Of a stretch of 64,000 nucleotides of DNA, positions 25,671 to 64,000 are shown piece by piece (position 1 is the first letter of the stretch; each line of letters starts with the position of its first letter). Made by a program: the position numbers and the translations under genes. The stretch is from Macrostomum lignano (taxonomy: Eukaryota), in NCBI GenBank assembly GCA_002269645.1, contig NIVC01002583.1:35031-99030 (forward strand), read 5' to 3'. Below the pieces are notes generated by a model. The model was not told where the DNA came from. It saw nothing but the letters and a program-made list of their open reading frames with translations, and did not search any database.

Positions 25671-26272
25671 ACCTTAATAGCAATTAACTATTTTTGCATT
25701 GGAGTTTTTGGATTTCTCTGACTTTTTGGAAGGATAGAATACTTTTTATAAAATTTTAGTGCAATTTTACTTATAATAACATTTAAAAATGTTTGACATT
25801 AAAATATTGTATATTCTCACCGCAATATTAAATTTTTGTTGTCATTACTAGCTCTGGAGCAAAAAATTGCAGAAATTTTTAATATAAAAATCTTCATTAA
25901 TAATAATATTAGAATAAATAGATAGGCTACTTAGATTAAAATCCTTACTCTTATGTCACCACCTAGTTCTTATTTATTGCTCTCACTATATGCTCTAGCT
26001 CAAGCTACCATACATTTTAGTAGCAAGTTATTTATTTCTACAAACTCAGTTCTAAGCTTATGTATTCCCCCTTGCTACTAAACTGAAAGTAGTGAGACTG
26101 TTTTACGAAGCATGCACACCATCTCCAAGCTAGTTATCTCTATCCATGAAAAAATCAATGCACTTTTAAAGAAAAAACTTTGTTGTAGTTAAACTGCAGT
26201 TATTAGCAACAGCTATTGTTTATAACTTTTATTGTCATATTTTTTAAACACCCTTCAGCCGCACCCAGCAAC

Positions 26273-30501
<4,229 letters not shown>

Positions 30502-31732
30502 CAGCCCGAGCTGCATCAGAGCTTTACAGTTTCCCCACTAGAGCGACTCTGTGTGCCTAGATTTTCTCTTTATTAAAACAAATTATAACTAGCAAATATC
30601 TTTTTAGCCTTTTTTTCACTTTCATTCCTTAGTTGTTTTGCTGTTTTCACGTAGATTTATAAACTTTATTCAATTTAAGCTAGCTCTACGATTTGAAGCA
30701 TCATTTATTATGCTGTTTTGCGAACATTTTATCAACTCCGACTTGCCCAAGTCAGTCAGAAAATCATGTCAATTTGTTTTCAAAAACAGAAACCCAAATT
30801 TCATGTTCTTGTTTTTTAGACTTATTTAATAAAATGTGACATTTATAATATATATTTTGCACCTGATTTGCCCTATCATTTTTAAAATTGGACACAACTA
30901 CATTTAATCGACTTTTTGAAATAATACATTATCTCATATAGATATCTATTTAGTATCTCTTTTCTTGTTTTGTAATCATTTAGGAAATTTTTAAACCAAG
31001 TCTTAGCAGCAGTGGATAGCGGTATTTTCAAAGCAGCAGAAATCTAATTGAGTAGGGATAAGCTCTGGGCATCTTAGGTGAAGGTCAATTCCCTATATTG
31101 ATTTATGATTGTCAAGTCTTAAACAGCTGCCAAGTTGAGCTATTCTTAAACCTGCTGCTCGAGCTTCAGAGAACACCGGTCAAGCTTGTTTATCTGTGCG
31201 TCTCTTTATAGGAAACAAATGACACCATTTACCAAAAAAGAATACTTAATTTTATCAAAGTAAATGCGTCCTCTTGAGCAATAAATATTTTTACGCGTTG
31301 GCGAGAGCTTGTTTTTTGTTATTTCCATGTGATGATTACTCATGTTTACTCGAACTCGTTACTACTATAATCCGTCGAAAACAATTGAGCATTTATTCGT
31401 GTATAAAAAGGTTAATTGAGTCGAAATGTGATTTATATATTAGCTTAAGCTTGTAAATGCGAATTCCATTATTTGTAGGCAAGCCACAGTTAGAAACAGC
31501 TGAGAAAAGTTGTTCGCTGCCACACTGATCTGACTACTTCTAATGCATATAGTAGTGTGTTAGGCTTAGCTTTTTGTATTTTCCTCCCGGTATATCCTAG
31601 GAATTGCCGCGGATTGCCCTCCCATACTAACCAACATAAATGGAATCAACTTCGCCCGCAGTGTCTTTTTTTCTCCTGCCTAACTTCTCAAAGTACTTCG
31701 TCTTGAACTCCCAATGTACATGTAGCTGTAAA

Positions 31733-34700
31733 ATGCTGTCATCAAAAGCGCCAAAACTTATCTTCGACGTCCGCAGCTTCTCAGCCTCATCATCCGTCGC
31801 CTCAGCAGTAGCGGCGGTGGCGTCGGCGGCCGCATTCTGGAGGCACCAACCGCGGTCTGCCGCCTGTCGGAGCAGCCGCTCCCCGACGTTTCGCCGCTGC
31901 TGTCGCCAGTAGGCCGGTCGGCGAAGTCGCCGCAGCCGCTGGCCATCCTGACGGAGCCGTCGGCGAGCTTCGTGCGGTCGCTGGCCGCCTGCTGGGCCTT
32001 TAAGGACAGACCTCCGTGCCTGGCGGTGCCGCTGAGCCCCGCGCACTCGCTGCCAGAGCTGCTGCACGCCGTGCGGGACTCCGGCGCCCGGGCTGTGCTG
32101 ACCGACGGCGACTCGAGCGGCGACGTCCTGCGCAAAGCCGGGGAGCTCGCAGACGCCGCCAGCCTGCCGCTGTGCCGATTCGGCGACCTGCCGCTGCTGC
32201 CGTCGGCCTCTGGAGACGGGCGGCCGCTTCCGGCTTGGAAGCCGGAATCCGAGCCCGCGTGAGCAGCGATTTTGGAGAAGCTGGCATGGCATGTGTACTT
32301 AAGTATGGTAGAGAAGGTAGTGGAAGAACTTTGGTTCTCCTTAATTGGAGCTGACCAATCAAAAATGAGAATTCCTTGAAGTAACGAAATTTTTCGATGT
32401 ACATGTGTAGCAATAAGATTTAGAGTTTATTTATAGACACATGTACATGTAATAAATCCTACTATGTAAATAGCCGTTGTACTGTCCTGCGCGGTGAGAG
32501 AACATGGTGACGCGGTGTCAAGTACTGAAAATGTAGACGTTATTACGAGCATATGTACCTGCTTAGAAGAAGCCTGTTGCTTAAGAGTCGGTAGAAATCT
32601 GTGACCACTCTAATGCATAACCGGGGTTTTGTACTAAACGCAGAGGCGCACTTTAAGCAACATTTTCACACAACCGGCGAGGGGCATTACTGCCCACTCC
32701 GCCGACTCCCCTGAGCAGGCATACAAGCGCGCGGATACGTACGCAGGCACACACTCACACAGGAGTGTACAGTGGCCCTAACTTTATTTATCGTTAGGCA
32801 TGTACACTTCACTTTGCCTTGGGGGTTGGCCCTCAAGGACGTTAATTGTACGAGCAGAGCCAAGCCGAAATTCAAATTTAGCCCCAAATTAATGTGACTG
32901 CACTTGGAATCGAGCCTGGGCCGCTGGAACTCAGAGCGCCGCACCAGACCACTGGTCTGTGGCCCAAAGCATAAATCGATACACAATATGTACTTGTATG
33001 TTATTCAGATAGTTGATTTGGTGATTGTTGACTTTTACGTCAAGACTAGAGTGAGTCATCTGCTACCAGTTATTGTCTTCTGGTTGCTTATGGTACAACC
33101 GGGATTTTTTACTCCTTGTACACTGTATGACGGATGTGGAATTCTCAATTATTTATATCTATTACGCATAAAGTAAATATTTGCAGCTGACTGCCCCACC
33201 CCAATGCAGCTACATCGTTTACACCAGCGGCACAACAGGCCGCCCCAAAGGAGTCGTGGTAACCCATGGCAACGCGCGAGCCCGGTGCCGGGCGGTGGCC
33301 TCGGCCTGGCGGCTGGGCCCTTCAGACCTGACGCTGAACTGCCTGCCGCTGCACCACGTGCACGGGCTGGAGAACTGCCTGCTGGCACCGCTGCAGGCCG
33401 GAGGCAGTGTGCTCATCAACCGCAGCTTCCAGCCTGAGCAGGTGTGGCAGCAGCTGACTGGCGCTGGCGCCTGGCCCCGGGTCTCAGTGTTCATGGCGGT
33501 GCCCACCATGTACGGCAGGCTGCTGGACCACCTGGAGAAGCGACCGGACTCGCAGCGGGCAGCCGTGAGGCGAGCCTGCGAGACCGGAGTTCGGTGAGCT
33601 GCATGTGAGATCGCTGTGTGAGGCTGAGGTGGAGGTGAAGTTAGTAGTGTCTGAGACGAGGGCTCAGGGTGCGTGTACGGTTTAAGCATTCTGCATTTCT
33701 GGTGTGTAGCATAGTAGTTTTAAGTCACAGTTATTATTCACAGTGTGTGAATAGCTACGAATTTCCGTGGAATTGCCTTCTTTATCATGTCTAAGATTAG
33801 CTCAGGTGAAAAGTGCGTTTATGGTTCAAGAATTCTCATTTCTGATGTTTCTCATAAACAAAATTAAATCAAAACTTTTATATGAAAGTAATATGAGGTC
33901 TTATAGAATGTGTTTTAGTTTTGAAAATAGCCATGGAATTTCCGTGGAGTTGCCTTTCTTTACAAGGTACTACCTTATGAATAGTTCTGCTAATCTGCCG
34001 ATCATTACAAAAGGAAAATATGACATGATTTCCAATGTCGCTATATAGCTATATTGAGAATAACTAAATGTTCAGAAAAATTTGTCCCTCCCATTTTTAC
34101 GGCTATGCTCAATCCTCAGTAATATAAGACACTGCAGCAACCTTGGCTACCAGCAATAAGCTTACAGTTGTAGAAGCTTTGCGGTAAAAAATTTAATTAC
34201 AAAGCCCAAATTTCGTGTCATTGCACACAGTTTCTGTTGATGCTGTCTACTCTACTTATCAGACTAAGTTTTCTGGACGAAACTTGATTTACATTAACTT
34301 CTTGCACTTTTAGGTGCAAAATTTTCGAATATGGGCTGATTTTGTGGGTTTAAAATTAGGCCGCAACGTAATCATGGAATTGCCACGGGTTTTCTGTTTT
34401 GTGACTATAGACTGAACTACGAGCTATGAGGTACTATCCTGTCTGGTTGGTGTGCGTTGAATTCTATACTCCTATGCTATTAGAGTGCACTTGTTCTTGG
34501 ACTTCTGGCTACTAGTTGTGCATTATTAAATTTAGCAAATCAATATTCGACTATCTGAACGATGAGTGTGGCCAAAATTTAAATGACGTTTTTTGAGGTA
34601 AACCCAAAGTAATGTGGCCGTCCATGTAATGAAATCTACATCCAGATAATTTGACGCTGCAGTCAGGCGCATTTACCGCCTTAATGAATTTTTTGATGGA

Positions 34701-40124: not shown

Positions 40125-41694
40125 ATGGCAGTCATCCAGGCTGCTCACCAACAGTCGCTCTGTTTAGCCCTCGATGCCGTGTCCACCACCCTGTCCAGAC
40201 GCCTGTCCCCGCTCGCCCGCTCCGACTCGGTGATGGACATCTACGAGGCGCTGACGGCGGCCGTGTACCTCATGTCCAGCGCCTCCAACCCGTTGAAAGT
40301 CAGCCGCGAGTCGCGCCGACTGTCATTCGAGCAGGGCGCCTGGGTACACATGGGCAGGACGCAGACGGTTGAGGACATGGTCGAGAGTGGCTTCTTTTAC
40401 CTTCAGGTGAGCTAAAGGTGATAGTTAAGAAGCAAACGTTTAGGAGCTAAATAGATTATCCTCAGCGCCTGGTCTGAGGTCTATGATCTATTATATGGAG
40501 GGCTTAAGCAGCCGACTCCGCAGTTTACAAAGTACGAGCGTATTCACAATCAGACTCAGACCCACTAGGCTTCACTACTGAGCAGGATCTAACGGTGTAT
40601 CATTTATTCTGCTGTCTTGTCAAAGTGCAACTGATATGTGGTAGTAACCATAGGAAGTGTTTTGTAAGGCCAACACGGAAGCTGCATTCTGCAGACAATC
40701 ATCGATTGGCAGGACAGCACAAAGACCTAAAGATCAGTGAGACAGCCACCCGCAAAGCTAAGAGACATGGCTATTGCATGGAATCAATTCAGTAATATCT
40801 TTTTAGTATTACTTAGAAGCTGGTGGATTTCTAGCAATATCTGGCAATATCACCTAGCTGGCAATATCTAGTTTAAGCTATCACCTTTATTAGTACGAGT
40901 TATTGAATTAAACCCGAATGTCTCTTTAGATCACGGGGTTTTGACGAAGAAGTTGATTTACAGCATGCTTCATCGTTACAGCATGTATTTAACCGCAGGA
41001 GGACGATCACGTGAAATGCTTCTTCTGCGACCTCGGCCTCAAAGACTGGGACGCTGGCGACGTCCCCGAGATGGAGCACGCCAAGTTCAGCCCGCTCTGC
41101 TTCTTCCTCAAGAGCTCGCGCGGTCTGGAATGGCTGCGCAGGTCGAGTCCCCGACCTCCTAACTACCCGACGTCCTACACCCGACAGGACCACAACCAGC
41201 TGCTGCGGATTCTGTCGGACGAGCTGCTCAGCGAGCCGGTGGACATTGTGTGCAAGCTGGGATTCTGCGACACCAAAGTGCTGCTCTGCATCGCCAGGAA
41301 GTTCATCCGGTTCAGGCAGAAGTTCACCAGACAAGAGCTGCTGCAAGAGATGCACAAGGAGTGGGACCGCGAGATGGCGGGCGAGCCCGAGCACTTCATC
41401 GGCAAGTTCGACCTCGCAGCCGTGCTCAGACAGTTCCGCGACTCCATGGCCTCGGTTCCCGGACCTCCGCCCGGCTCCCAGCGACAGCCGCTGACCCAGC
41501 AGCAGCAGCTGCAGCAACAGGGCGGCTCTGTCGGTAACCGCTGCCGGAACTGCAACATTCGGGATGTGGAGATCGTGTGTCTCCCCTGCGGTCACCTGAG
41601 TCTCTGCTTGCAGTGCAGCCGGTCCGTCCGAGTGTGTCCCGCCATCGGCTGCGGACAGCAGGTAGACAACTTTGTCCGCGCGTTCGTGTCCTAA
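40125..41694 (+). CDS. Inhibitor of apoptosis (single BIR + UBA-like + RING), copy A; exons 40125-40406, 40999-41694
   Basis: BIR: RRLSF...GFFY|...CFFC-x16-H-x6-C. UBA-like segment: PVDIVCKLGF. The RING is C3HC4 (CRNC...CGHLSLCLQC...CPAIGC) and ends VRAFVS*. The intron is phase 0. The true start could lie further 5'. Confidence 0.92.
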
Positions 41695-44949: not shown

Positions 44950-46590
44950 TTAAAAGAGCCCACTCTCGCCTAAACGTAAAACGCGCATTCGGCCAAATGA
45001 AAATCCGTTGTAGCGAGGTGTGCTGTGCACTCGATTACGGATGTCATTCCGCTCAACCGAAAGAACGCCAGTTCCCTGGACGTTGTCCACCTGCTGTCCG
45101 CAGCCGATGGCGGGACACACTCGGACGGACCGGCTGCACTGCAAGCAGAGGCTCAGGTGACCGCAGGGGAGACACACGATCTCCACATCCCGAATGTTGC
45201 AGTTCCGGCAACGGTTACCGTCAGAGCCGCCCTGCTGCTGCAGCTGCTGCTGCTGGGTCAGCGGCTGTCGCTGAGAGCCGGGCGGAGGTCCGGGAACGGA
45301 GGCCATGGAGTCGCGGAACTGTCTGAGCACGGCTGCGAGGTCGAACTTGGCGATGAAGTGCTCAGGCTCGCCCGCCATCTCGCGGTCCCACTCCTTGTGC
45401 ATCTCTTGCAGCAGCTCTTGTCTGGTGAACTTCTGCCTGAACCGGATGAACTTCCTGGCGATGCAGAGCAGCACTTTGGTGTCGCAGAATCCCAGCTTGC
45501 ACACAATGTCCACCGGCTCGCTGAGCAGCTCGTCCGACAGAATCCGCAGCAGCTGGTTGTGGTCCTGTCGGGTGTAGGACGTCGGGTAGTTAGGAGGTCG
45601 GGGACTCGACCTGCGCAGCCATTCCAGACCGCGCGAGCTCTTGAGGAAGAAGCACAGGGGGCTGAACTTGGCGTGCTCCATCTCGGGGACGTCGCCAGCG
45701 TCCCAGTCTTTGAGGCCGAGGTCGCAGAAGAAGCATTTCACGTGATCGTCCTCCTGCGGTTAAATACATGCTGTAACGATGAATGCATGCTGTAAATCAA
45801 CTTCTTCGTCAAAACCCCGTGATCTGAAGAGACATTCGGCCTTCGTTCAATAACTAGTACTAATAAAGGTGATAGCTTAAACCAGATAGTGAAAAACTAA
45901 TTATTATAACACTAAGAAGACACTGCTGAATTGATTTCATGCAATAGCCATGTCTCTTAGCTTTGCGGGTGGCTGTCTCACTGATCTTTAGGTCTTTGTG
46001 CTGTCCTGCCAATCGATGATTGTCTGCAGAATGCAGCTTCCGTGTTGGCCTTACAAAACACTTCCTATGGTTACTACATATCAGTTGCACTTTGACAAGA
46101 CAGCAGAATAAATGATACACCGTTAGATCCTGCTCAGTAGTGAAGCCTAGTGGGTCTGAGTCTGATTGTGAATACGCTCGTACTTTGTAAACTGCAGAGT
46201 CGACTGCTTAAGCCCTCCATATAATAGATCATAGACCTCAGACCAGGCGCTGAGGATAATCTATTTAGCTCCTAAACGTTTGCTTCTTAACTATCACCTT
46301 TAGCTCACCTGAAGGTAAAAGAAGCCACTCTCGACCATGTCCTCAACCGTCTGCGTCCTGCCCATGTGTACCCAGGCGCCCTGCTCGAATGACAGTCGGC
46401 GCGACTCGCGGCTGACTTTCAACGGGTTGGAGGCGCTGGACATGAGGTACACGGCCGCCGTCAGCGCCTCGTAGATGTCCATCACCGAGTCGGAGCGGGC
46501 GAGCGGGGACAGGCGTCTGGACAGGGTGGTGGACACGGCATCGAGAGCTAAACAGAGCGATTCTTGTTGATCAGCCTGGATGATGAACAT
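44950..46590 (-). CDS. IAP copy B (BIR + UBA-like + RING) with replaced C-terminus; exons 46309-46590, 44950-45753
   Basis: Near-identical inverted copy of A. It diverges after ...GQQVDN (~45081) into a novel 43-aa tail and also has a different N-terminus (MFIIQADQQES). Confidence 0.88.
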
Positions 46591-49539: not shown

Positions 49540-51753
<2,214 letters not shown>

Positions 51754-54469
51754 TTGACAGCTACATTGGGAGTTCAAGACAAATTACTTTAATTAGGCGG
51801 AAGAAAAAAAGGGAAAAAACATTGCGGGCGAAGTTGATTCTATTTATGTGGTTAGTATGGAGGCAAATCCGCGGCAATTCCTCGGGTATTCCTGGAGGAC
51901 AATACAAATACAACAGTGCTGTGTCAGACCATAATTGGCAGCGAAAAAAACTTTTATCAATTGTTTTGCAACTGTGGTTTGCTACAAATGATGAAAGTTA
52001 CATTTAAAAGCTTACTGAGTTCATAAGAAGCACAATTTCCGCTTATTCAATCCTTTTATACATGAACGAATGCTCTTATTCTCAACAGATTATAGCTAGT
52101 TAGAGTAAGTTAAGTTATTCCATTTGGGAATTAGACTATCCACCTATTAACCTCTGAGATTCTGCAGAGTTCAATGTGCATTTAGACGGACTCCAGACGG
52201 ATTTATGTAAGCTCATGATTTTTTAAATATAATTTCTGTGGAAATTCCATGGCAATTCCATGGATTAGCCAAAATATACTATAGTAAATGTTCCAATTCT
52301 ATCACATTCAGGATTGCAACCGTTTTTTTCTATAGGCCCCTGTCGAATAATTGCACTGTATAAACGTGACTAATGCTGCACGTGAAAGACTCAGTGTAAA
52401 GCACCTGAGCTTAGACTCAGTGTAAAGCACCTGAGCTTACATGTGATACGTATTTAATTAACCAGTTAATTCCTTACCCTCTAGGATCATTAAGAGTTGA
52501 AAATTGCTGAAACTATGCAGAATAAGTGTCTTAAAAAATTATCATTACTCTTAATCTGACTTTCATTTAGAAAAAAAATTGCGAGTACTTGGTTAGAGTG
52601 CAGGTGAAAGAATAGTGACTTTTTTTGCCTAAAACGAAACTCCAGAATAAAAGTTGTTTTGTATCTCCTGCCTGACCAAGTCGGTCCACGTGGTTGTACC
52701 TTGTATAGGTAAATCCACGGAAAAGCCGTGCAATTGGTGGGTTAGGATTGTACAGCGGCGGCCTTATGGCTGTCGCGTCTGCGAGTCTTCACCATAGCTA
52801 CTACCTAGCACCAACGGTAGTTTTCAAGCTACGCATTTTTGTTTGCAGGTTGACTTGTAGCGATAAACAGAAGTCCACACTTTTATAACTTGTATTCGTT
52901 TGAGCTGTCAATTACAGCGATTTCAACGTACGCGAGATGTTGGCAAAGCTATTGTACTAATGGAATTCACTGCGATTCTTTCGAATTTCTTCTACTTGCT
53001 CCGCTATGACTGCGCTCACTACTTTTAAGTAGGAGAATAAGAAGATTAAGTTCAAAACATCTTCTAGACTTCCGACAACTTCGATCTGACCATTGGGGGC
53101 GGTAATCTGATCCTAATTTGGAAGGCAATTTTATGACGAGACAATCGGTTGTCTAAAGACTATTATTTCATTAACTGGCCTCTTTTAACTAGTCTTTTAA
53201 CTACTCCTAATTACGGAAAATCAAGAAGATTGAAGTGGCTCTCTGTATAAATTTTGTTTATCTCAAATTTGGCTGCCTTGTTGAAGCAAATTTTCGTCAT
53301 TACTTGCATTCATCTCTCTTTTACCGCGTCACAGTCCCAGACAGGCTGGCAGTGAAATGAGCTGCTTGGTTGTATTAACAGCGCCTGTGGGCAAAAGGTG
53401 CGAATTGCGATGGTTTATAAAACGACCTACCGCTCCCTTCAAACCCCTGAGCTCTCGGCTCGGACGGGTTGGAGAGCAGCGCGATGTTGAACTCAACTCC
53501 GGTGTCGCCGCTTCCGCAGTACGCATTCTATGAGAGGCTGGTTTCCCTGCTGCAGCTGAAATGCTTGAGCAAGGGCCGAACAGCTCGGTAGCCTGCGCAG
53601 TCTCCAGCATTATCGGTGTCTTCTGCGGCTGTCTGGTCCCTCTCGAGCAGGCAATTGCAGGGTTGGGATAAAATTGCATGGAAATAGGGAGCAGCTTCGG
53701 GAGCACCAGAATGCATGATGCGGACAAAACTACATGCAAAAATAATTCAGAATTTCTCGGTTGATATTTGATATGCCAAAAAACTACTAGTAGTATTATG
53801 CATCGTGTTTAAAATTTTCTGATTCGGCTAAACACACAGCAGGTGAGAATTGCATACAAATTGCTCACAGTACTGCTTACACATTCCCTATGATTTGGAA
53901 ACAGCTCAAGAAATAAAAACCCGAGAGCCTTGCCCCGACCGTACACGTTATTTTTACACGTTTTTTGTAGTCAACAAAATTACTAAAAATTTAGAGGACT
54001 GTGTCTGTTGGAGTGCTCGTTTGCTCGATAACTTCTGAACAGCTGGCTGGTTCAAACTTGACCTGGTGGGCTCTGTGCGGTGTAACAAACTCGGGCATGT
54101 TATTATAAGCTATTAAATTTCATCTGGGATCTTTAAATACCGGTATGTTTTAACTGAGTCAGACATCTGAGACTTCAAAATTTATTCAATGGACACTAGA
54201 CAAAGGGGAGGCAGGGTGCTCAAAATTTGATCATTAAAATTCAAACTTGCTTACGAAGAACTTGCTAAATAACAGAGCTTATATTAGGGTCTACCTCACT
54301 GATCTTACATGTAAACTAATCACTAATGTCCATTTCACTTTTTAAATACATTGCATTGTTGCTAACTTGCTACACCTTTAAAGTACAAATTTGAAGGTTG
54401 ACATCCATGTCATCAAGGGATACTGAAACTTGAGTGTATCCTGGAAAAAGATACCACTTAATCTGGACA

Positions 54470-55378: not shown

Positions 55379-58300
55379 TTATAGCGGCCGAAACGATTTT
55401 ATCAACGATACGGGCCCGGCACGCCGATACGCATCCGTGTGAACCTGGTAGTGTGCCATGGCAACCTCGGTGCTGTGGTTCAGGCGGTTACCAAGGACTT
55501 TCAGGTCGTGTCCTTCCAGTAGACCCTATAATTTTTTATTGTTTCATTAAAGAAACTTATAAACTGTCGCCTTTTTTCTTCAAGATAAATAAGTGACCTG
55601 ATGACGCTAAATGTGACTGAATTGCTGAATGAGTGAACAGGGGGATCGGCAGAGTGAACGCATTGCTGAATGAGTGAACAGGTGATCGGGAGAGTGAACA
55701 GGTGATCGGGAGAGTGAACGCATTGCTGAATGAGTGAACAGGTGATCGGGAGAGTGAGTGCATTGCTGAATGAGTGAACAGGTGATCGGGAGAGTGAGTG
55801 CATTGCTGAATGAGTGAACAGGTGATCGGGAGAGTGAGTGCATTGCTGAATGAGTGAACAGGTGATCGGGAGAGTGAACGCATTGCTGAATGAGTGAACA
55901 GGTGATCGGTAGAGTGAACGCTTTGCTGAATGAGTGAACAGGTGATCGGGAGAGTGAACGCATTGCTGAATGAGTGAACAGGTGATCGGGAGAGTGAACG
56001 CTTTGCTGAATGAGTGAACAGGTGATCGGGAGAGTGAACGCATTGCTGAATGAGTGAACAGGTGATCGGTAGAGTGAACAGGTGATCGGGAGAGTGAGTG
56101 CATTGCTGAATGAGTGAACAGGTGATCGGGAGAGTGAGTGCATTGCTGAATGAGTGAACAGGTGATCGGGAGAGTGAGTGCATTGCTGAATGAGTGAATA
56201 GGTGATCGGGAGAGTGAACAGGTGATCGGGAGAGTGAGTGCATTGCTGAATGAGTGAATAGGTGATCGGGAGAGTGAACAGGTGATCGGGAGAGTGAGTG
56301 CATTGCTAAATGAGTGAATAGATGACTGGGAAAGTGAATGCATTGTTGAATGAGTGAACCCTTATTGCCTAAGAATGTGACTAAGTCAGAGAATAGGCAA
56401 AATTATATTGTCGTTTAGACGAAAGTGTAGAAACTTACCCTAGTCTCGACAAATTTGCGGAAGTCTGTGTGTGTGACGCCACTGAGAATCGGGTTGAACT
56501 TTTCTCTGTAAGCCGCAAATAGTCTGCCGAAATCGCCATAGGGAATTCGAAGCAGAGGCTCCGTAGGGCCTTCTTTGACACGTTCTTCAACGACCCGCTG
56601 GAGCAGCTGGCGACACTCGCTCACGTTTATCTTGGCGGAGCCGTATTCGGAGTCCGTCTTGTGGCTTTCCACCTGAAGAAAGGGACGTTTTGCTGTCGTT
56701 ACAATTTCGAAATAATGTAACTTAATTAGGTTTGTTACTGATATAGAACAGTTTGTCGTCATTAACAATGAATGGTTTTTTATTAGTTAGGTTGATGACT
56801 GAGTACACGGTTAGAGGTAAAGACAGTAGGCCTGAATAAAGTCAGTGGGAAGATGGCGGCAGGATGCTAATTGGTTTTCTGGTCATTCCTAACGGAAGTT
56901 TAGCACTTGATAAAAATTCTGGTCATTATTTCCACTCACCTTTAGTTCCTTGTCGGGATCCTCGAGCCATCTGATGCCGTCCGCGACCGTACAATTAACA
57001 ACGTCTTTAAGTTTGCTCTTAAAAGTCTAAAAATGTTTAATAAATACTTTAGTGAAACCCTACGAGGACATCGCTAGCTCCAGTGTAGTGTACTTCTTTA
57101 AAAATAATTTTTTGCACTTTAATGCGAGTGATTGTAACATGTTAAATTTGCTTACCCTGCGGCGAGCCTCGTAAACTTTCTTTCTTCGAAGGTAGTATTT
57201 CATCCACAGGGTGCAGCACGCGCCGAAACTTTCTAAATCAAGTTGGAGCCCAGAAGCAGCAACGTCTTGCAACCTATAGGCTCGCAGAAACGTAGCCACC
57301 TTCTGCAGGACGCTGACTGTTTCCTTCAGCGGACCGAAGCTCTGAGCCGGCAAATATTCGTTGATCTAACAACAATTAGGTAATAAAAATAACTATTTGA
57401 ATCACAAAACAAAAATGCACTGCTGAAAAACCACATAACCGTGATAGCTGGCTAGTTATGACAAAATATATGAACAGGTGACTGGGACAGTGAATGAATT
57501 GGTGAATGAGTGAACAGGTGACTGGGACAGTGAATGAATTGGTGAATGAGTGAACAGGTGACTACGGGGTACTGCGGGCCGGCCACCGGCGGAGGGGGAA
57601 CCTAGGGAGGGCGAGGCTGCTGTTGGGCCGAAAGGAACCACAGCAACCCCTGCCCCCCAGGATACAACCCCCGCTGGTGAGCCACCCAGTATACCTGCTA
57701 CAAGCGCGGCCGGGCCTTCGGGAACCGCCGCCACCAACTACGCCTCAAAGGTCAAGCTCCAACCGGCGGTCATCGTCTTCGGGGAAGAGCAGGACCTCAC
57801 GGCCGACGAGCTCGACAGTGCCTGGTGCACCATCGATGCTGCGCTCATCGACCAGCTCCTGGCGGGCCGCCCTGTGAGCGTGGTCAAGTCTGCCAAGACC
57901 GACGGCTGCATCTTCATCTGGTGCAGCTCGGAGGAGAGCAGCCGCAATCTACGCGAGCTTCTGCCAAAGCTGAACTGGCCCAAGAAGCTCGGCAAGCTCG
58001 TCTTCGCTAGCGAGGGCGAACGACAAAAGACCCAGCGCTTTCGCGTCTGGATCCCGGCCGGCAGTGCCATTAAGTCCGGAGATCAGCTTAGGCAAAAATT
58101 GCTAAAGCTGCACCCCACCTTGAGGTCAACGGGCTCCTACACCACGCCACTTCCCGCAAGGAGAAGGGGGCTACGGTGATCCTAGGGCTCTCTGATGACT
58201 GGGCTAAGCGCTTTCCGCCTAAGCCCACAATTCATATTGGTCTGACTCAGCTGACCATCCTCCGCTGCGAGGAGCGGAAAGCTGATGAAGCCAAGAATGC

Positions 58301-61300
58301 CAAGGCTTCCGAAACCGGAACTGGGGCCCGGGCTCCTCCGGCAAAGAAGCCGAGGCAAACGGCCGATCCTATGCCCGGTAAGGCAGTTCGCGCTGCTGAA
58401 ACCGGAAATCGCAATCGCAGACCCGCCAGGAGCACCCGGAGGTCCGGCCTGATCCAGCGCGCGCTGGACCAGGCCAAGAACCTTCGTGCGCATCGTGAGC
58501 GGGCCCGCGCTTCTCGCGCTCCACCCCAACAGCCAGAAGGCCAGACTCTAAGCGGGGAGGCTCCGACCGACTGGTTCGAGTCTGTGACTCACCAGGAGGC
58601 TGGCGCCACCCGCATCGACCTGACCGACGAGGCAAAGGGGACGGGCAGTGACAGCACCGAAGCACGCAGGGGAGGCGACGGTAACGTCCACGCTGGGCTC
58701 ACGTCCGCGGAGGACTCCACAGCCACCCTAACTGCTGAGGACGCTGAAACTCCCATGGAGGTCTGCGGGTCACCCACCACTGAAAAGGAGGAGGATGACC
58801 TGCTCAACGATTCCCCAACTGCGTGATAATGATCAGCAACCAGGGAATCCATTGCCTGCAGATTAATCTGCAGCACTGCGTCGCAGCCTCGGTCAACCTT
58901 ATGCGTTACGCCGAGCTCGACAAGCCGGGGCTCATCCTCGTCCAGGAACCCTGGACTCTCAGAGGTAAGCCTCAAAACGCCCCTGCTGGCTACAATTGTT
59001 TTTTTTTTACTTACCCTCGCGAGGCCAACCAGCCTCCCAGAGCTTGCATCTTTGCGAGCAAAACGCTCAGTGGTGGCTCAGATCGGACCTGTCCAACAGG
59101 GACATCTGCGTCATCCAATCCGAGGACCTTCTTCCTGGGAAGACCACCCTCATTGCCTCGGTTTACCTACCAGGCGATGCTGCGGTCGTCCCCAGAGCCC
59201 TCGCTACGCTGGTAGAGCTTTGCTCTGCCAAAAACTACGAGCTAATGGTTGCCGGCGACATCAACGCCCACCATACTCACTGGGGCAGCACTGGCATTAA
59301 TCAGAGAGGCGAAGACCTCCTAGCCTACGTTGCCTCTACGACCCTCGAGTTCTGCAACTCTGGGTCCACCCCTACCTTTGACAACGGACGGTGGTCGGAG
59401 GTGATCGACGCTACGCTCGCAACGCCCAGACTCTACCAGAGTATTGGGGCGTGGCGGGTGCTTCCAGTGTCCTCACTCTCGGATCACAAGTTCATCTCCT
59501 TCAACCTAATGGCCGCGCGTAGCGCAACTCGTGCTACGTGGAGACGGAACGCCAGAAATACTGATTGGGAAACCTTCGGGCTCGCCCTGAATTAATTCCA
59601 TCGGTCTCCTGGCCAACCATCCACGATCACGTCGTGCCGAGAGGCGGATGAGTGCGCGACTGTTTTGAAAGAGACGCTAACCGCCGCCTTTGAGGCGTCC
59701 TGCCCTTTAAAAGCCTAGAAAGGGAAAAAATCGGCGCCGTGGTGGAATCCCGAGCTCGGCAACCTCCGTCGCAGGGCTAAGAGACTCCACCGCAGAGCAA
59801 CTAAAACTAAGAGCCCTGCAGACCAAACCGCCTATCATGAAGCAATCCATGAGTTTAAAAGGCAGGTTAGGAATGCAAAGGCTCAAAAATGGCGACAATA
59901 CTGTGAGGAGCTAGAGGGCTCACGCCCCACCTCCAGAGTTGTGAAAGCGCTCACGCTGGACAAAATGTCTAAGCTCTCCTCGGTCAAACGCACCGACGGT
60001 ACGTCCACGGACAACCCAGAGGAAACGCTTGATGTAATGCTCACTGCGTTTTTCCCCCAACGAGCCAGCTAACCAGACCACTCCGGATCACTCGGAGGGA
60101 GGTCACGCGCTGGCTGCCTCTATCATCACGGAGGACCGCATCGTGAGAGCGGCAAATTCCTTCAAGCCTTTCAAAGCCCCAGGACCCGACGGCATTGTAC
60201 CGGCCCTCCTAAGAGAGGCGGTTGAATGCCCAGGCTTCCTGCGCAAACTTTGCAGCCTTCTTCGGGCATGCATCACGCTTGGTTATGTCCCACAGGCATG
60301 GACCGAGGCAAAGGTGATCTTAATCCCTAAGCCAGGCCGCCCGGACTACCATTCTATCAAATCCTTCAGACCGATCAGCTTGACCTCCTCCCTGGTCAAG
60401 CTGATGGAGAGACTGGTGCTTTGGCGCCTTCTCTCTGTTGAGCTGAAGAACAAACCTCTCAGCGAGAACCAGCACGCTTTTCGGGCGGGTCGCTCCACTG
60501 AAAGCGCGCTGCACGTCCTGGTCGATAAACTCGAGAAGGCCGTGCTTGGTAATGGCTTTGCTCTGGGGATCTTCCTGGACATCATTGGCGCCTTCGATAA
60601 CGTCCTCTTTGAGGCGTTCCGAAGAGCTCTTTGTGAGAGGCAAACGCACTCACATCTCACCAGATGGATCATGTACATGATCAGCCATCGCACGGCCACC
60701 GCCAGTCTGCTGGGCTACCAGAGGACGGTCCCCGTCTGCAAAGGTAGCCCGCAAGGTGGGGTGCTGTCTCCAGTTCTCTGGAATATGGTCATCAATGAGC
60801 TCCTCCGGGATGTTCGGCCTGACCCCATTCTGAAAGTTGGATATGCGGACGATGTCACCGCGGTGGCATCTGGTCCGTCCCCTGATACCCTCAGGGACCT
60901 TCTTCAGAACTTTATCTACGCCGCTGAGCAATGGGCGGAGCGCTGTGGTTTAAGGCTCTCTGAGACTAAGACCGCAGCGATCATGTTCACCAGCAGGACC
61001 AAGTGGCGGATTCGGCCGCTCACGCTTTACGGAAGGGAAATCCCCTTCTGCAAGTAGACTAAATGTCTGGGTATTACCCTGGACCACAGGCTGAACTGGT
61101 CACCCCACGTTCAAACAAAAGCCAAAAAGGCCTTCGCAGTCCTCGCGCAATTGCGCAGGGCTGTCGGCACCACCTGGGGGCTCACCCCCAAGCGCCTCTG
61201 GTGGATCTACACTGCAATGGTTAGGCCCGCTATCTCGTATGGCGGCCTGATCTGGGCTAGCGCCCTGCAGATAAAGACCTGTCTAGAGGCTCTCAGGAGA

Positions 61301-63950
61301 GCGCAAGGGCGCGCATGTCGCACGATCATGAGCGCCCCTCCGTCTGCTCCTTACGATGGCCTCAACGCCTTCCTTAACATTCCTCCGCTGGACATCTTTG
61401 TCCGCAGGGAAGCGGCTAAGACTGCCCGCCGTCTAGCTGACGCTGGCACTCGAATCCAGCCCCATAGGGCCATGGCTAAGCGCAAGCTTCTGCCCCACGC
61501 TGACCTCTGCCTCAAGGACTTGAGAGACAGCAGCGGGCTCCACGTCCTATCTGACGGCGAACCCCGCACTCTCAATCTCTTTCAGCGCTACAAGGTCACC
61601 ATCCCCTCTAGGGATGCTGCCAATGACCACTGGAATTTCCAGGAGGTCCATTGCTACACGGACGGATCCATCAAAGACGGTCGCGCCGGCTTTGGGGTCT
61701 GCATCATCATCAACGGCCGCGTAATTGCCACGCATGCCCAGCACACTGGTAGACTCTCCACAGTCTTCCAGAACGAAGTCCTGGCCATCAGCTCCTGAGC
61801 TGCAGAGCTGAACGCCAAGGTTACGAGAGGAAAGACTATTGTCATCCACTCCGACAGCCAAGCGGCCTTACAGGCCCTTTGCCACACCACAACGAACTCC
61901 CGGACAGTCGCCGACTGCGCCCGGCAGCTCAACCTCCTGGCCAGAAGCAATACTGTCAGGCTGAAGTGGATCCCAGGGCACGCAGGGTTTCCGGGGAACG
62001 AGCTGGCAGACACCCTCGCCAAGAGGGGCGGCTCTGGCTCTTTCTTCGGCCCTGCCCCCCTGGTCCCTATGCCCTTGACAGTCATCAATCGTCAGATCGA
62101 CGACTGGGCTGACTCCCTCCACAGGGACAGATGGGCGGGCACCCAAAACTGCCGGCAATCTCGTGCCGCGGTTCCTTGCCCGTCTCGCAGGCTCAGAAAC
62201 ATCCTTCTGAACCAGAATCGGAAGGATATTCGAGCCCTTGTCATGACCCTTACCGGCCATGGCTACCTCGCCAGGCACTGCTTCCTCCGAGGCGACCTCG
62301 AGAGCGAAATTTGCCCCTTTTGCGAGTGCGACAATGAAGATGCTCAGCACTTTGTTTGTCACTGCCCCTTCTTTAACAGAGACCGGCTACGCTACCTCGG
62401 GCCGAACCCGTCCATTGACGAGGTCTGCCAGCCCGACAGCATCCCACGGCTCATCCAGTTCCTTCGGGCGACTAGACGAGCCAGTTTCTTCCCCACGGAA
62501 GATCACGCTGCAGGACGGACCGGCGGACCACCCTGACCGGCCCCACGCCTCTGCCTGTCTGCGGGCCTTCAGGGGCTGGCGGAATGGGCGACCCTCGCCT
62601 CCCCGCTGTGTCTACGGACCACCCTGCAGCTAAGTCAAGTAAGTCAAGAACAGGTGACTGGGACAGTGAATGAATTGGTGAATGAGTGAACAGGTGACTG
62701 GGACAGTGAATGAATTGCAGAATGAGTGAACTGGTGACTGGGACAGTGAATGAATTGGTGAATGAGTGAACAGGTGACTGGGACAGTGAATGAATTGGTG
62801 AATGAGTGAACAGGTGACTGGGACAGTGAATGAATTGGTGAATGAGTGAACTGGTGACTGGGACAGTGAATGAATTGCAGAATGAGTGAACTGGTGACTG
62901 GGACAGTGAATGAATTGGTGAATGAGTGAACAGGTGACTGGGACAGTGAATGAATTGGTGAATGAGTGAACAGGTGACTGGGACAGTGAATGAATTGTGT
63001 GAATGAGTGAACAGGTGACTGGGACAGTGAATGAATTGGTGAATGAGTGAACAGGTGACTGGGACAGTGAATGAATTGGTGAATGAGTGAACAGGTGACG
63101 AAGATTGCAAAATAAATATGGAGGAAATTTGCATATTGAATCGGTATGCTGCTCACTTTTTCACGAGCGTCCTGTCGGATGAGTTCGTTGAAGGTTGCCG
63201 ATCCTGTCGCGTCCATCACGCGGACTAAGCAGCGGTCCATCTTGCCGATGGTGCTTTTGGCAAGAGTTCCGCCGGACGCACCACCAAGATGTTTCTGTGA
63301 AGGAAATCAGAAGATAAATATTTTTGCTACGAGCGTAGATATCGTAAATTATCACTTTTTCAATTATCAATTGTCATGTTTAATTGCGAGGGGTGCATAA
63401 ATTCCCTAAACTAAAATACTAAAATACTAAAATGAGATATATTTATAGTATATTACTGATTCAAGAAACAAGCGATTTAAAACGATTTTCATGAGATTTG
63501 CACTATTCGGTCAATTTTTTTCTCGGACCATACATATCTCCTGGTGGGTCGCCATAACTCCGAAAACTAAAATAGCATTATACATTGCTAGAACTTTCGT
63601 TGCTATGAAATTTCGGGTTTGTGATGCCCCCCACACTCTTAATTTTGTTTCGAAATTGTTTATTTAGAAGGGGATTATATAGGCCCTAATCGTCGAAAGA
63701 ATCTTAATAATTCAAAGGGCATTGAAAAAAAGTTTTTTTCTCACCAGAAAGTCGGCCATTTCAGGATTAGAATCTTTCATGCCGTCGAGTTTTGCCTTTT
63801 GGTCGGCCAAAACCTCCGGCTTAATAATTCTGAAAGGCATTGAAAAAAAGTTTTTTCTCTGTCTTTGCCAGAAGTCGGCCATTTCAGGATTAGAATCTTT
63901 CATGCCGTCGAGTTTTGCCTTTTGGTCGGCCAAAACGGTCTTTATGTCCA
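55379..63950 (-). CDS. Spliced tyrosine-recombinase (Crypton-like) gene, 5' end beyond window; exons ...-63745, 63157-63294, 57156-57365, 56940-57026, 56439-56672, 55379-55525
   Basis: Phase-0 GT-AG junctions give one open frame: MADFL|KHLGGASGG...|INEYL...W.KYYLRRKK...|...|VESHKTDSEYGSAKINV...THTDFRKFVETR|GLLEGHDLKVLGNRLNHSTEVAMAHY. This supplies the YR catalytic K, (H)xxR, H and Y positions. The region around the first catalytic Arg is unresolved. Confidence 0.7.
55620..56360. repeat. 40-bp satellite A (GAACAGGTGATCGGGAGAGTGAGTGCATTGCTGAATGAGT) in last intron of the YR gene
   Basis: Direct tandem copies, some with 20-bp half units. Confidence 0.95.
57470..63100. repeat. 40-bp satellite B (GAACAGGTGACTGGGACAGTGAATGAATTGGTGAATGAGT), split into 57470-57563 and 62648-63100 by a LINE
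   Basis: The same unit lies on both sides of the LINE. It is related to satellite A. Confidence 0.93.
57564..62647 (+). mobile_element. Near-full-length, 5'-truncated non-LTR retrotransposon (R1/LOA group): ORF1 + ORF2 (AP endonuclease, RT, RNase H, CCHC); inactivated
   Basis: APE: LQINLQH...LILVQEPW, GDINAHH, SDH. RT: KAPGPDGI, FRPISL, QHAFR, GSPQGGVLSP, YADD. RNase H: YTDGS, VFQNE, SDS, WIPGH, GNELAD. The C-terminus has CPFC...H..C. The tail is (TAAGTCAAG)2 and the TSD is GAACAGGTGACT. There are several in-frame stops and frameshifts. Confidence 0.96.
63710..63950. repeat. ~120-bp tandem duplication of an exon end + intron start of the YR gene
   Basis: VLADQKAKLDGMKDSNPEMADF is encoded twice. 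Only the downstream copy keeps the CTG|GTGAG donor. Confidence 0.85.
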
Positions 63951-64000
63951 AGACTCAGGCTCCGGCTCCGACTTCTGAACCTCAGTCTCCGGCTTCTGAT

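Follow-up and report, generated by a model that had tools for sequence, protein, structure and literature searches.

A Spliced Tyrosine Recombinase-Derived Gene in Macrostomum lignano and Its Intronless Relatives on Mobile DNA Elements

We found that the minus strand of positions 55379-64000 in the window (the whole 64-kb stretch of Macrostomum lignano DNA analyzed here) holds the 3′ two-thirds of a genuine spliced gene of several exons that descends from a tyrosine recombinase (YR). Its product comprises the helical N-terminal and catalytic domains of a very divergent YR, belonging to a zinc-finger-YR family whose members are intronless on two mobile elements of the same animal, E1 and E2. 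We lean, by a modest margin over even, toward an overall account in which this spliced YR-derived gene is a stationary third lineage beside the mobile, intronless E1 and E2.

YR-driven DNA transposons in animals are rare and poorly understood, and we know of no animal Crypton whose mobility has been demonstrated. What is reported here is a YR family that is invisible to Pfam, with 99% identical copies, insertion sites in both the filled and the empty state, and a lox-like site formed by the joined ends; a new site-specific recombinase is a possible yield. The window gene might in addition represent a young recombinase domestication, in which introns were gained and one catalytic segment was lost in frame, beside relatives that are still mobile. 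Since culture and transgenesis are both available for M. lignano (PMC7053086), the excision-circle-integration model set out below is directly testable.

Gene Model and Its Support

The gene is made up of six minus-strand exons (63813-55379), which five phase-0 GT-AG introns join into a single open frame of 294 codons with no stops, closing with a TAA at 55381-55379. The length of each exon is divisible by three, and all introns begin with GT(A/G)AG and end with AG, leaving five of five splice-site pairs intact. This exon structure and its stop-free frame had been proposed in an earlier note made from the sequence, and they held up in several respects. First, the spliced protein scored 147.6 bits against an HMM built from seven homologs only, with an alignment unbroken over the A/B, B/C, D/E and E/F junctions. 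Second, a six-frame scan of the entire 64 kb with the same HMM recovered exons B-F in the correct order on the minus strand and gave no other match. Third, the GC content switches between exons (0.46-0.56) and introns (0.28-0.37) at the predicted splice sites. At third codon positions it is 0.59 in the exons versus about 0.31 in the adjoining introns; together with the 294 open codons this is a hint of constraint, even though 0.59 lies below the value of most nearby host-gene ORFs (0.60-0.84).

Exon A (63745-63813; 23 amino acids, VLADQKAKLDGMKDSNPEMADFL; donor GTGAG) is copy 2 of an in-frame 123-bp tandem duplication on the minus strand (63703-63936; 1.9 copies, 90% match) that spans the exon and the beginning of intron A-B; in the upstream copy the GT donor is gone, and the frame is still open on read-through. 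Exon B (63157-63294; 46 amino acids) encodes an N-terminal helical, core-binding-like domain (family HMM positions 296-344), and exon C (57156-57365; 70 amino acids) supplies the end of that domain and the linker (…YYLRRKKVYEARRR; family HMM positions 358-415). Exon D (56940-57026; 29 amino acids) places KSKLKDVV opposite the NASRPDV of homologs. The catalytic residues follow in exon E (56439-56672; 78 amino acids), with the Lys of HKT (56663-56655) and the Arg II codon of THTDFRK (56459-56457), and in exon F (55379-55525; 48 amino acids plus TAA), where RLNHSTEVAMAHY supplies both the nucleophilic Tyr (55450-55448) and the His (55477-55475). At its 5′ end the gene extends past the window edge, and the zinc-finger N-terminus known from its relatives would be expected past position 64000. 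The earlier note had overlooked this, along with the duplication around exon A and the absence of the box I arginine with about 50 residues, described below. Because nothing closer than about 30% identity was recovered among 1.8 billion cluster representatives, the M. lignano annotation included, the gene is taken to be unannotated, with no transcript support seen.

Introns, LINE and Satellites

Intron B-C (57366-63156, minus strand; 5791 nt) contains a 40-bp satellite (57470-57563 and 62648-63099) that is interrupted by a 5.1-kb LINE on the plus strand (57564-62647), antisense to the gene. The LINE has endonuclease and reverse-transcriptase Pfam matches in broken frames and a 12-bp target duplication, GAACAGGTGACT, at 57552-57563 and 62648-62659; its portion 61491-62648 is 98.5% identical to M. 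lignano NIVC01001526.1. A related 40-bp satellite (55621-56359) occupies intron E-F (55526-56438, minus strand; 913 nt). The gene thus carries a LINE and satellites in its introns with all splice sites and the frame intact, as had been read from the sequence at the outset. The satellites were not found in the M. lignano loci retrieved.

Fold and Family Identity

The window protein had no match in Pfam, among PDB sequences or in a word-index homolog search. Neither it nor the family profile matched Pfam Phage_integrase, DUF3504 or DUF3435; the profile likewise matched no PDB sequence, and NCBIfam gave nothing relevant. Searching the word-index database with the family profile returned its own members and P0010 only, and a narrower family alignment recovered one additional locus from metagenome and viral collections.

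The YR assignment is instead supported at the level of the predicted fold of a homolog, P0004, with which the window protein is collinear in alignment. The AlphaFold model of P0004 (mean pLDDT 71.6, about 80-96 in the core) finds its best PDB matches in XerA (E = 5e-4), Cre and poxvirus topoisomerase IB, and its best viral ones in phage integrases and baculovirus VLF-1; the matches to XerA, Cre and phage integrases cover both domains, over about 350 aligned columns, with a probability of 1.0. Modeled from its single sequence, the window protein reached a pLDDT of 36, which is unusable; the fold evidence is the homolog's. The comparison with Cre/XerD-type proteins suggested in the earlier note thus yielded XerA and Cre, and its reading of a YR-derived multi-exon gene is upheld by the homolog's fold and by a weak match of window protein residues 186-281 to the PHROG integrase family phrog_1 (E = 2.7e-4).

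A likeness to animal Crypton-type proteins, also claimed there, found no support: there is no Pfam match to Phage_integrase or DUF3504, and hhalign comparison of the family catalytic domain with CryptonA, CryptonI and CryptonF gave P = 0.24, 0.025 and 0.35, using shallow alignments machine-read from the PDF of Additional file 4 of PMC3212892. The values were P = 0.3 for DIRS and P = 0.47 for DUF3504, and over all the sets compared, including the prokaryotic YRs, P was 0.025 or worse. As a control, CryptonA against CryptonI gave 6.5e-13, and most pairs of known groups fell between 1e-7 and 1e-28.

Catalytic Residues and the Missing Box I

The three motifs first read as HKTxxxxG, THTDFRK and RLNHSxxVAxxHY are all present, as HKTDSEYG at 56663-56640, THTDFRK at 56474-56454 and RLNHSTEVAMAHY at 55486-55448. 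Of the five residues of the R-K-R-H-Y pentad found in intact homologs, the window protein thereby retains four (Lys, Arg II, His and Tyr), and the family alignment shows no variation in its H, K, T, G, R, H and Y columns. The catalytic Lys of the beta-hairpin lies in an HKT shared by every family member, the window protein included. In the hhalign match to CryptonI, which is not significant, HKT stands opposite T-K-N/T. Arg II is invariant, and the residue three before it is Thr family-wide (TNTxYR); the THTDFR of the window protein has a His four residues before the Arg (H-x-x-x-R). Thus, of the K, HxxR, H and Y positions assigned in the earlier note, the lysine, second arginine, histidine and tyrosine stand as family-conserved residues, and the HxxR histidine does not. 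Poxvirus topoisomerase IB likewise lacks the HxxR His. The His and Tyr of RLNHSTEVAMAHY are invariant, and the stretch falls inside the PHROG integrase match. The motifs follow in the correct order, with 23 residues from Arg II to His and 9 from His to Tyr.

The fifth residue is lost: the Arg I column has Leu in the window protein (KSKLKD) versus Arg in homologs (GNA(S/H)RPD), and about 50 residues preceding this site, modeled as two helices in P0004, are missing. Where homologs encode these ~50 residues, including box I (GNAsRPD, Arg I), the window gene has intron C-D (57027-57155, minus strand; 129 nt, an in-frame length of 43 codons; GC 0.31, in line with the remaining introns). Nowhere in the six frames of the 64-kb window did the homolog HMM scan detect coding sequence resembling box I.

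We considered and rejected intron C-D as decayed coding sequence: reading through it gave 147.4 versus 147.6 bits, the intron peptide alone scored -2.8, and it has two stops. Its 43 codons come close to the ~49 missing HMM positions, a near-equality of length that hints at intronization.

The box I loss is not fresh, as intron C-D matches the other introns in AT-richness. With about 50 residues and the box I arginine missing, the window copy is unlikely to be an element's working enzyme. Judging from its sequence, the window gene is probably unable to catalyze recombination and would be an immobile descendant of the recombinase gene of an element.

The Mobile Relatives E1 and E2

Both E1 (7.5-8.4 kb) and E2 (9.4-10.5 kb) have a zinc-finger-YR protein with two N-terminal zinc fingers as their only large ORF, and no cargo ORF of at least 100 amino acids was found in either. 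Their copies are about 99% identical at unrelated loci, with sharp boundaries and unrelated flanks in three copies of E1 and two of E2. A constant 4-bp repeat flanks the elements, CCAT at E1 and CCCC at E2. For one E2 copy the empty site is present in the LINE of the window itself, where CCCC at 61493-61496 (plus strand) is the counterpart of the E2 insertion point in another M. lignano LINE copy (locus L005). If joined as a circle, the element ends would set inverted arms on either side of an asymmetric 6-bp spacer, a lox-like arrangement that for E2 reads GTCATAAACGTGCC-CCTATA-GGCACGTTTATGAC.

We infer that E1 and E2 transpose in the manner of Cryptons. They would excise to a circle, as Cryptons are thought to, and the YR would recombine the joined circle site with 4-6 bp of microhomology in the target. 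E1 and E2 are a kind of element without earlier description. The undescribed YR-mobilized element envisaged in the earlier note is thus found in these paralogues; the idea is unlikely to carry over to the window copy as a working enzyme, since this copy lacks the box I segment. The window gene represents a third lineage, with about 26% identity to both E1 and E2, which share 25% with each other. The only trace of E1/E2 terminal arms in the window is a 15/17 match to the E2 arm at 53124-53140, correctly oriented and 2.2 kb 3′ of the stop; in a wider blast this 17-mer did not reach significance.

What the Window Gene Is Now

The window gene is most likely a derivative that neither moves nor catalyzes recombination and that has either been domesticated or died recently. 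That it is still under selection as a domesticated gene, probably for a DNA- or recombinase-binding protein and not an enzyme, falls slightly short of an even chance in our estimate. The missing ~50 residues could leave the product misfolded, a condition that fits a pseudogene and domestication equally. More speculatively, the zinc-finger-YR family may be an unrecognized superfamily of animal YR DNA transposons, currently mobile in M. lignano, of which the window gene would be a domesticated offshoot that gained introns, dropped the segment with Arg I and was put to use by the host, perhaps as a binding protein without catalytic activity that regulates or blocks E1- or E2-type recombination. 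Counted against our main account are the position of exon A within the tandem duplication, the third-position GC below that of most host ORFs, and a gene that is unannotated with no transcripts seen.

These same features, the duplication at exon A and the unannotated gene with no close protein recorded, together with the missing box I, the LINE and satellites accumulated in the introns and the active relatives in the same genome, would also suit a third element lineage with introns, of which this would be an ordinary copy that died only recently, its frame still open through the shortness of time and the loss of box I as the killing lesion. We regard this as possible but doubtful: the AT-richness of intron C-D argues that the lesion is not fresh, third-position GC is 0.59 beside introns at 0.31 with every other invariant family residue kept, five of five splice-site pairs are intact, and the known mobile relatives are intronless. 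A good deal less probable is a working recombinase of a larger element whose ends fall at the window edge or beyond it, its Arg I replaced by a neighboring lysine (KSKLKD) or encoded by an exon absent from the assembly. While four of five pentad residues and the correctly oriented 15/17-base arm-like 17-mer 2.2 kb beyond the stop speak for it, no window frame offers a box I-like coding sequence, two catalytic-domain helices are gone along with the arginine, the arm-like motif is not significant in the wider search, and the introns hold a LINE and satellites. Finally, it is very improbable that the gene is unrelated to recombinases and its motifs arose by chance, as the lack of Pfam or PDB sequence matches for the window protein or family profile and the non-significant hhalign comparisons with known YR groups might suggest, given the XerA, Cre and phage integrase fold matches across both domains, the PHROG match, the correct motif order and spacing, and relatives on elements with lox-like ends.

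Comparison with Known Systems

Prokaryotic and phage YRs (XerA, XerD, Cre and phage integrases) provide the best fold matches to P0004 over both domains. The R-K-R-H-Y pentad of intact homologs and the PHROG match of the window protein point the same way; its His-Tyr gap of 9 residues is also that of XerD, and the ends of E2, once joined, make up a 14-6-14 site comparable to lox, FRT and dif. In contrast to these enzymes, the zinc-finger-YR family is eukaryotic and fused to zinc fingers, has the HxxR histidine replaced and is without a Pfam Phage_integrase match. The DIRS, Ngaro and PAT retrotransposons are likewise eukaryotic elements encoding a YR; however, the window gene lacks a reverse transcriptase or RNase H of its own, the only reverse transcriptase nearby being that of the antisense intronic LINE with its own target duplication, and hhalign gave no significant relation (P = 0.3). 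Starships are giant, cargo-carrying elements of fungi. Their 'Captain' YRs (DUF3435) resemble the present family as divergent eukaryotic YRs that mobilize a DNA element, whereas E1 and E2 measure only 7.5-10.5 kb, have no cargo ORF of at least 100 amino acids, and yield no DUF3435 match in Pfam.

The DUF3504 genes KCTD1, ZMYM2-4, QRICH1, KIAA1958 and WOC are domesticated Crypton recombinases. Like them, the window gene is YR-derived, intron-containing and host-resident, and has lost part of the catalytic set. It differs in having no Pfam DUF3504 match (hhalign P = 0.47) and in the extent of the loss, which is confined to Arg I and its segment; in DUF3504 most of the catalytic tetrad is missing (PMC3212892).

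The Cryptons are a probable parallel in mechanism for E1 and E2. These DNA transposons, reportedly the subject of work by Goodwin in 2003, were treated further by Kojima and Jurka (2011; PMC3212892). CryptonA, I and F have no detectable sequence relation to the zinc-finger-YR family (P 0.025 or worse), which also differs in its two N-terminal zinc fingers and in T-x-x-R instead of H-x-x-R; moreover, animal Cryptons are reported to lack terminal repeats, while both E1 and E2 end in short inverted arms. On the side of likeness, E1 and E2 are DNA elements with the YR as their only large ORF, without reverse transcriptase or long terminal repeats, and the brief constant repeat found at either junction is consistent with a circle recombining with a microhomologous target; the window gene would itself derive from an enzyme of such an element. 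The features of the Crypton mechanism, namely defined ends, a YR as sole enzyme, several copies and a constant junction repeat, are seen both for E1, in three copies, and for E2, in two copies and an empty site.

A spliced tyrosine recombinase-like gene

Joining six minus-strand exons, namely A (63813-63745), B (63294-63157), C (57365-57156), D (57026-56940), E (56672-56439) and F (55525-55379), rebuilds the multi-exon frame proposed in the earlier note. Every exon has a length divisible by three and is bounded by AG before it and GT(A/G)AG after it, and the resulting 294-codon frame terminates at the TAA that closes exon F, while its 5′ end extends past the window edge. Three independent checks show that this gene call exceeds chance. 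First, the spliced product scores 147.6 bits against a profile HMM built from seven relatives only, with the alignment unbroken across the A/B, B/C, D/E and E/F junctions. Second, when all six frames of the 64 kb are searched with the HMM, the minus strand yields exons B to F in their correct order and nothing else scores credibly. Third, the GC content is 46-56% in the exons (59% at third codon positions) and 28-37% in the introns, with the shift falling at the predicted splice sites. The three motifs quoted in the earlier note are all in the spliced product; one of them, THTDFRK, had been read as HxxR and in fact has the spacing H-x-x-x-R.

At the 5′ side, a 123-bp (41-codon) in-frame tandem duplication (63703-63936) covers exon A and the start of its intron. 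In its upstream copy GCAAAG replaces the GTGAG donor, and the frame is open through both copies.

Intron contents and the rest of the window

The LINE and satellites described earlier within the introns match what we found. Intron B-C holds a 5.1 kb antisense LINE (57564-62647) with endonuclease and reverse-transcriptase Pfam matches and a 12-bp target duplication, inserted into a 40-bp satellite (57470-57563 and 62648-63099); over its 3′ 1.16 kb this LINE shares 98.5% identity with NIVC01001526.1 of M. lignano, which places the window in that species or one very near to it. Intron E-F also holds a related 40-bp satellite (55621-56359), and both contain the core GAGTGAACAGGTGAYYGGGA and run in the same direction. 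This satellite type was found nowhere else in the 64 kb and is absent from the M. lignano loci of the homologs; the two introns may have a shared origin. A plus-strand ORF at 49781-50341 resembles the C-terminal cysteine-rich part of the LINE (compare 62069-62536) and probably represents a piece of another LINE that has diverged further.

Elsewhere, the window carries ordinary host genes with BIR-RING, LamG-like, macro, AMP-binding and IPP-2 products. Two inverted ORFs at 41011-41694 (+) and 44950-45741 (-), with near-identical translations comprising the end of a BIR domain and a RING finger, suggest that an IAP-like gene was recently duplicated in inverted orientation. On the minus strand, genes at 3393-4678 and 8460-9739 form a tandem duplicate pair; one ORF, in its copy at 8460-8972, matches Pfam Laminin_G_3, and the ORF next to it, which translates similarly in the two copies (…SLAELLCSRWCTRLAADGSMF…), matches no Pfam family. 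At 26216-30464 (+), an ORF that by eye is H2A-like is followed by one matching the Pfam Macro domain, a possible macroH2A-like gene, with a tandem-array-like run of repetitive ORFs between the two (~28.7-29.6 kb). Inverted GC-rich ORFs about 19 kb apart, at 31627-32413 (-) and 51123-51777 (+), have near-identical translations and form another repeated block.

An apparently rare family with a tyrosine recombinase fold

The window protein matches no Pfam family, neither Phage_integrase nor DUF3504, and has no PDB sequence match and no word-index homolog. A HMMER pass over 1.84 billion cluster representatives returned six relatives (E = 1e-17 to 5e-8), namely two clusters of M. lignano hypothetical proteins and four individual ORFs, each from a short ENA or Logan contig. 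None has a Pfam domain above threshold. The family appears to be rare. Members from metagenome or read-archive assemblies (L001, Logan SRR23867507; L002, ENA ERZ23491819; L003, Logan SRR25569785; L008, JGI Ga0193947_1003596) occur as ORFs without introns, on contigs that are short and AT-rich. The relatives, 464-1109 aa in length, display from N to C terminus a pair of finger-like Cys/His motifs, then a helical domain of ~120 residues and finally a domain bearing the conserved motifs GNA(S/H)RPD, HKTxxxYG, TNTxYRK(F/Y)IET and RLxHxxxVA(R/K)QxYxA. Intact members of the family possess the R-K-R-H-Y pentad.

Several lines of evidence bear out the earlier assignment of the gene to the tyrosine recombinases (YRs). 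We ran the AlphaFold and Foldseek comparison that had been suggested for it on one homolog, P0004, whose model, based on an eight-sequence alignment, has a mean pLDDT of 71.6 (~80-96 across residues 180-470). Its matches in the PDB are XerA (E = 5e-4, probability 1.0), many Cre chains and poxvirus topoisomerase IB, and in BFVD phage integrases (5.7e-5 and 4e-4) and baculovirus VLF-1; they span ~350 columns, that is, both YR domains. The window protein itself weakly but directly matches the integrase family phrog_1 of PHROG (E = 2.7e-4) over residues 186-281, which carry the second catalytic arginine (Arg II), the histidine and the tyrosine. The spacing of these residues (Arg II-His, 23 residues; His-Tyr, 9) fits a YR when set against that in XerD. 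Given the structural matches, the PHROG match and the motif spacing, the family has the tyrosine recombinase fold.

Loss of the box I segment

In the homologs, ~50 residues separate the end of exon C (…ARRR) from the start of exon D, and in the P0004 model they form two helices followed by box I, which carries the first catalytic arginine (Arg I). In the window this segment is replaced by the 129-nt intron C-D (43 codons, in frame), and exon D begins with KSKLKDVV, aligned to NASRPDV with a leucine in the arginine column. Reading through the intron gives no gain in HMM score and meets two in-frame stops, and no box I-like sequence is present in any frame of the 64-kb window. As the GC content of this intron (0.31) is in line with that of the other introns, it is not freshly decayed coding sequence. 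Since all introns are in phase 0, either exon deletion or intronisation would have preserved the frame, and the segment could have been lost by either route. The product retains Lys, Arg II, His and Tyr and lacks Arg I together with part of the catalytic-domain core; it probably could not catalyse recombination.

Mobile relatives in M. lignano

The earlier suggestion of an undescribed YR-mobilised element appears to hold for two intronless relatives, E1 and E2, which lie in repeated blocks at unrelated M. lignano loci and each encode one of the two M. lignano protein clusters. E1 is a 7.5-8.4 kb block, 99.2-99.8% identical across NIVC01000217.1 (locus L004, 7692-15640), NIVC01000073.1 (L006, 8481-16903) and NIVC01000033.1 (L009, 4399-11902). 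The similarity ends sharply at both boundaries and the surrounding sequence is unrelated from copy to copy, one lying in an intron of a UQ_con gene, one close to a Miff gene and one within the span of a TRAM_LAG1_CLN8 gene. E1 opens with CCATACTTTCC… and closes with …GGAAAAGCC; it is flanked by CCAT on either side, and its inverted arms (GGAAAAG and CTTTCC) are imperfect. The ends are clean in two copies and offset by 2 nt in the third. The copies also vary in the number of 444-bp repeats. E2 is a 9.4-10.5 kb block, ~99% identical between NIVC01001526.1 (L005, 7187-17691) and NIVC01000359.1 (L007, 7203-16586), again with unrelated flanks. It starts with CCCCTATAGGCACGTTTATGAC and ends with GTCATAAACGTGCCCC, and CCCC lies beside both copies. 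The L005 copy sits within a LINE of a family also present in the window, where the LINE reads …aagcttctgCCCCacgctgacc… at the matching point and has a single CCCC (61493-61496), i.e., an empty site.

In both elements the YR-like ORF, in E1 a zinc-finger-YR protein, is the only large one and has an intronless conserved core, the remainder being non-coding sequence and internal tandem arrays. Closing E2 into a circle would place inverted arms of 14 bp on either side of the spacer CCTATA (14-6-14), with the predicted junction GTCATAAACGTGCC-CC(CC)TATA-GGCACGTTTATGAC. The constant short junction repeat, the lack of a variable target duplication and of a DDE transposase, the YR as sole enzyme and the palindromic joined site together point to a mechanism in which the element would excise as a circle and the YR would then integrate it at a target microhomology. 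E1 and E2 offer a testable animal YR transposon.

Lineage and fate of the window gene

Across the conserved core, the window gene is 26% identical to E1 and 26% to E2, which are 25% identical to each other. These values rule out a decayed copy of E1 or E2, and the window gene instead represents a third lineage of equal depth. Such divergence is too deep to have built up neutrally with the frame still open, implying that for most of its history selection maintained the gene, whether it belonged to an element or to the host. We tentatively read it as domesticated. Continuing constraint is favoured by the ten intact splice signals, the 294 open codons, the retention of all invariant family residues outside box I, and a third-position GC of 0.59 in the exons beside introns with a GC of 0.31; the exon value exceeds those of E1 (0.49) and E2 (0.43) and nears those of neighbouring host genes (0.60-0.84). 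Against constraint, no annotated or clustered protein among the 1.84 billion representatives matches the window gene itself, the deletion takes out structural helices and exon A is duplicated, features that would suit a recently dead copy of the third lineage, which we consider less likely than domestication given the intact splicing and frame. That the gene still encodes an active enzyme is highly doubtful with Arg I gone. The window copy is of interest chiefly as a possible young domestication beside still-mobile relatives.

Downstream, 2.2 kb 3′ of the stop, the sequence GGCAATTTTATGACGAG at 53124-53140 (+) agrees with the E2 terminal arm GGCACGTTTATGACGAG at 15 of 17 bases, and is oriented as the right end should be in an element with a minus-strand gene. 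The match was not significant in a wider search, and we treat this putative element end only as a lead.

Comparison with known tyrosine recombinase systems

Pfam has no model for the window-gene family, and our literature search returned no paper that connects Cryptons or tyrosine recombinases with Macrostomum. For a profile-against-profile comparison we used alignments of animal Cryptons, DIRS, prokaryotic YRs and DUF3504 published by Kojima & Jurka 2011 (PMC3212892, Additional file 4), aligning every group anew beforehand. Most pairs of known groups match strongly, e.g., CryptonA with CryptonI (6.5e-13), CryptonA with DUF3504 (1.8e-28) and DIRS with prokaryotic YRs (1.1e-16). In this test, which is rough as the alignments are shallow and were machine-read from a PDF, the best value for the window-gene family is a non-significant P = 0.025 (CryptonI), many orders of magnitude from the control pairs; that alignment pairs the two Arg I residues and matches HKT with TK(N/T). 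Membership by sequence in the tested Crypton groups (CryptonA, CryptonI and CryptonF), DIRS or DUF3504, whose Pfam model likewise finds no match in the window protein, is rejected on this value. By sequence comparison, the family is a separate, very divergent YR lineage, and we place the window gene with E1 and E2 among the eukaryotic DNA elements that carry a YR and the genes derived from them. The term Crypton-like, applied to the gene in the earlier note, may stand for the probable mechanism of its relatives and fails for sequence membership. The joined E2 ends are akin to lox, FRT and dif sites in having inverted arms around a spacer. Cryptons are proposed to excise as circles that the YR then integrates at a microhomology, and the movement suggested here for E1 and E2 would be the same.
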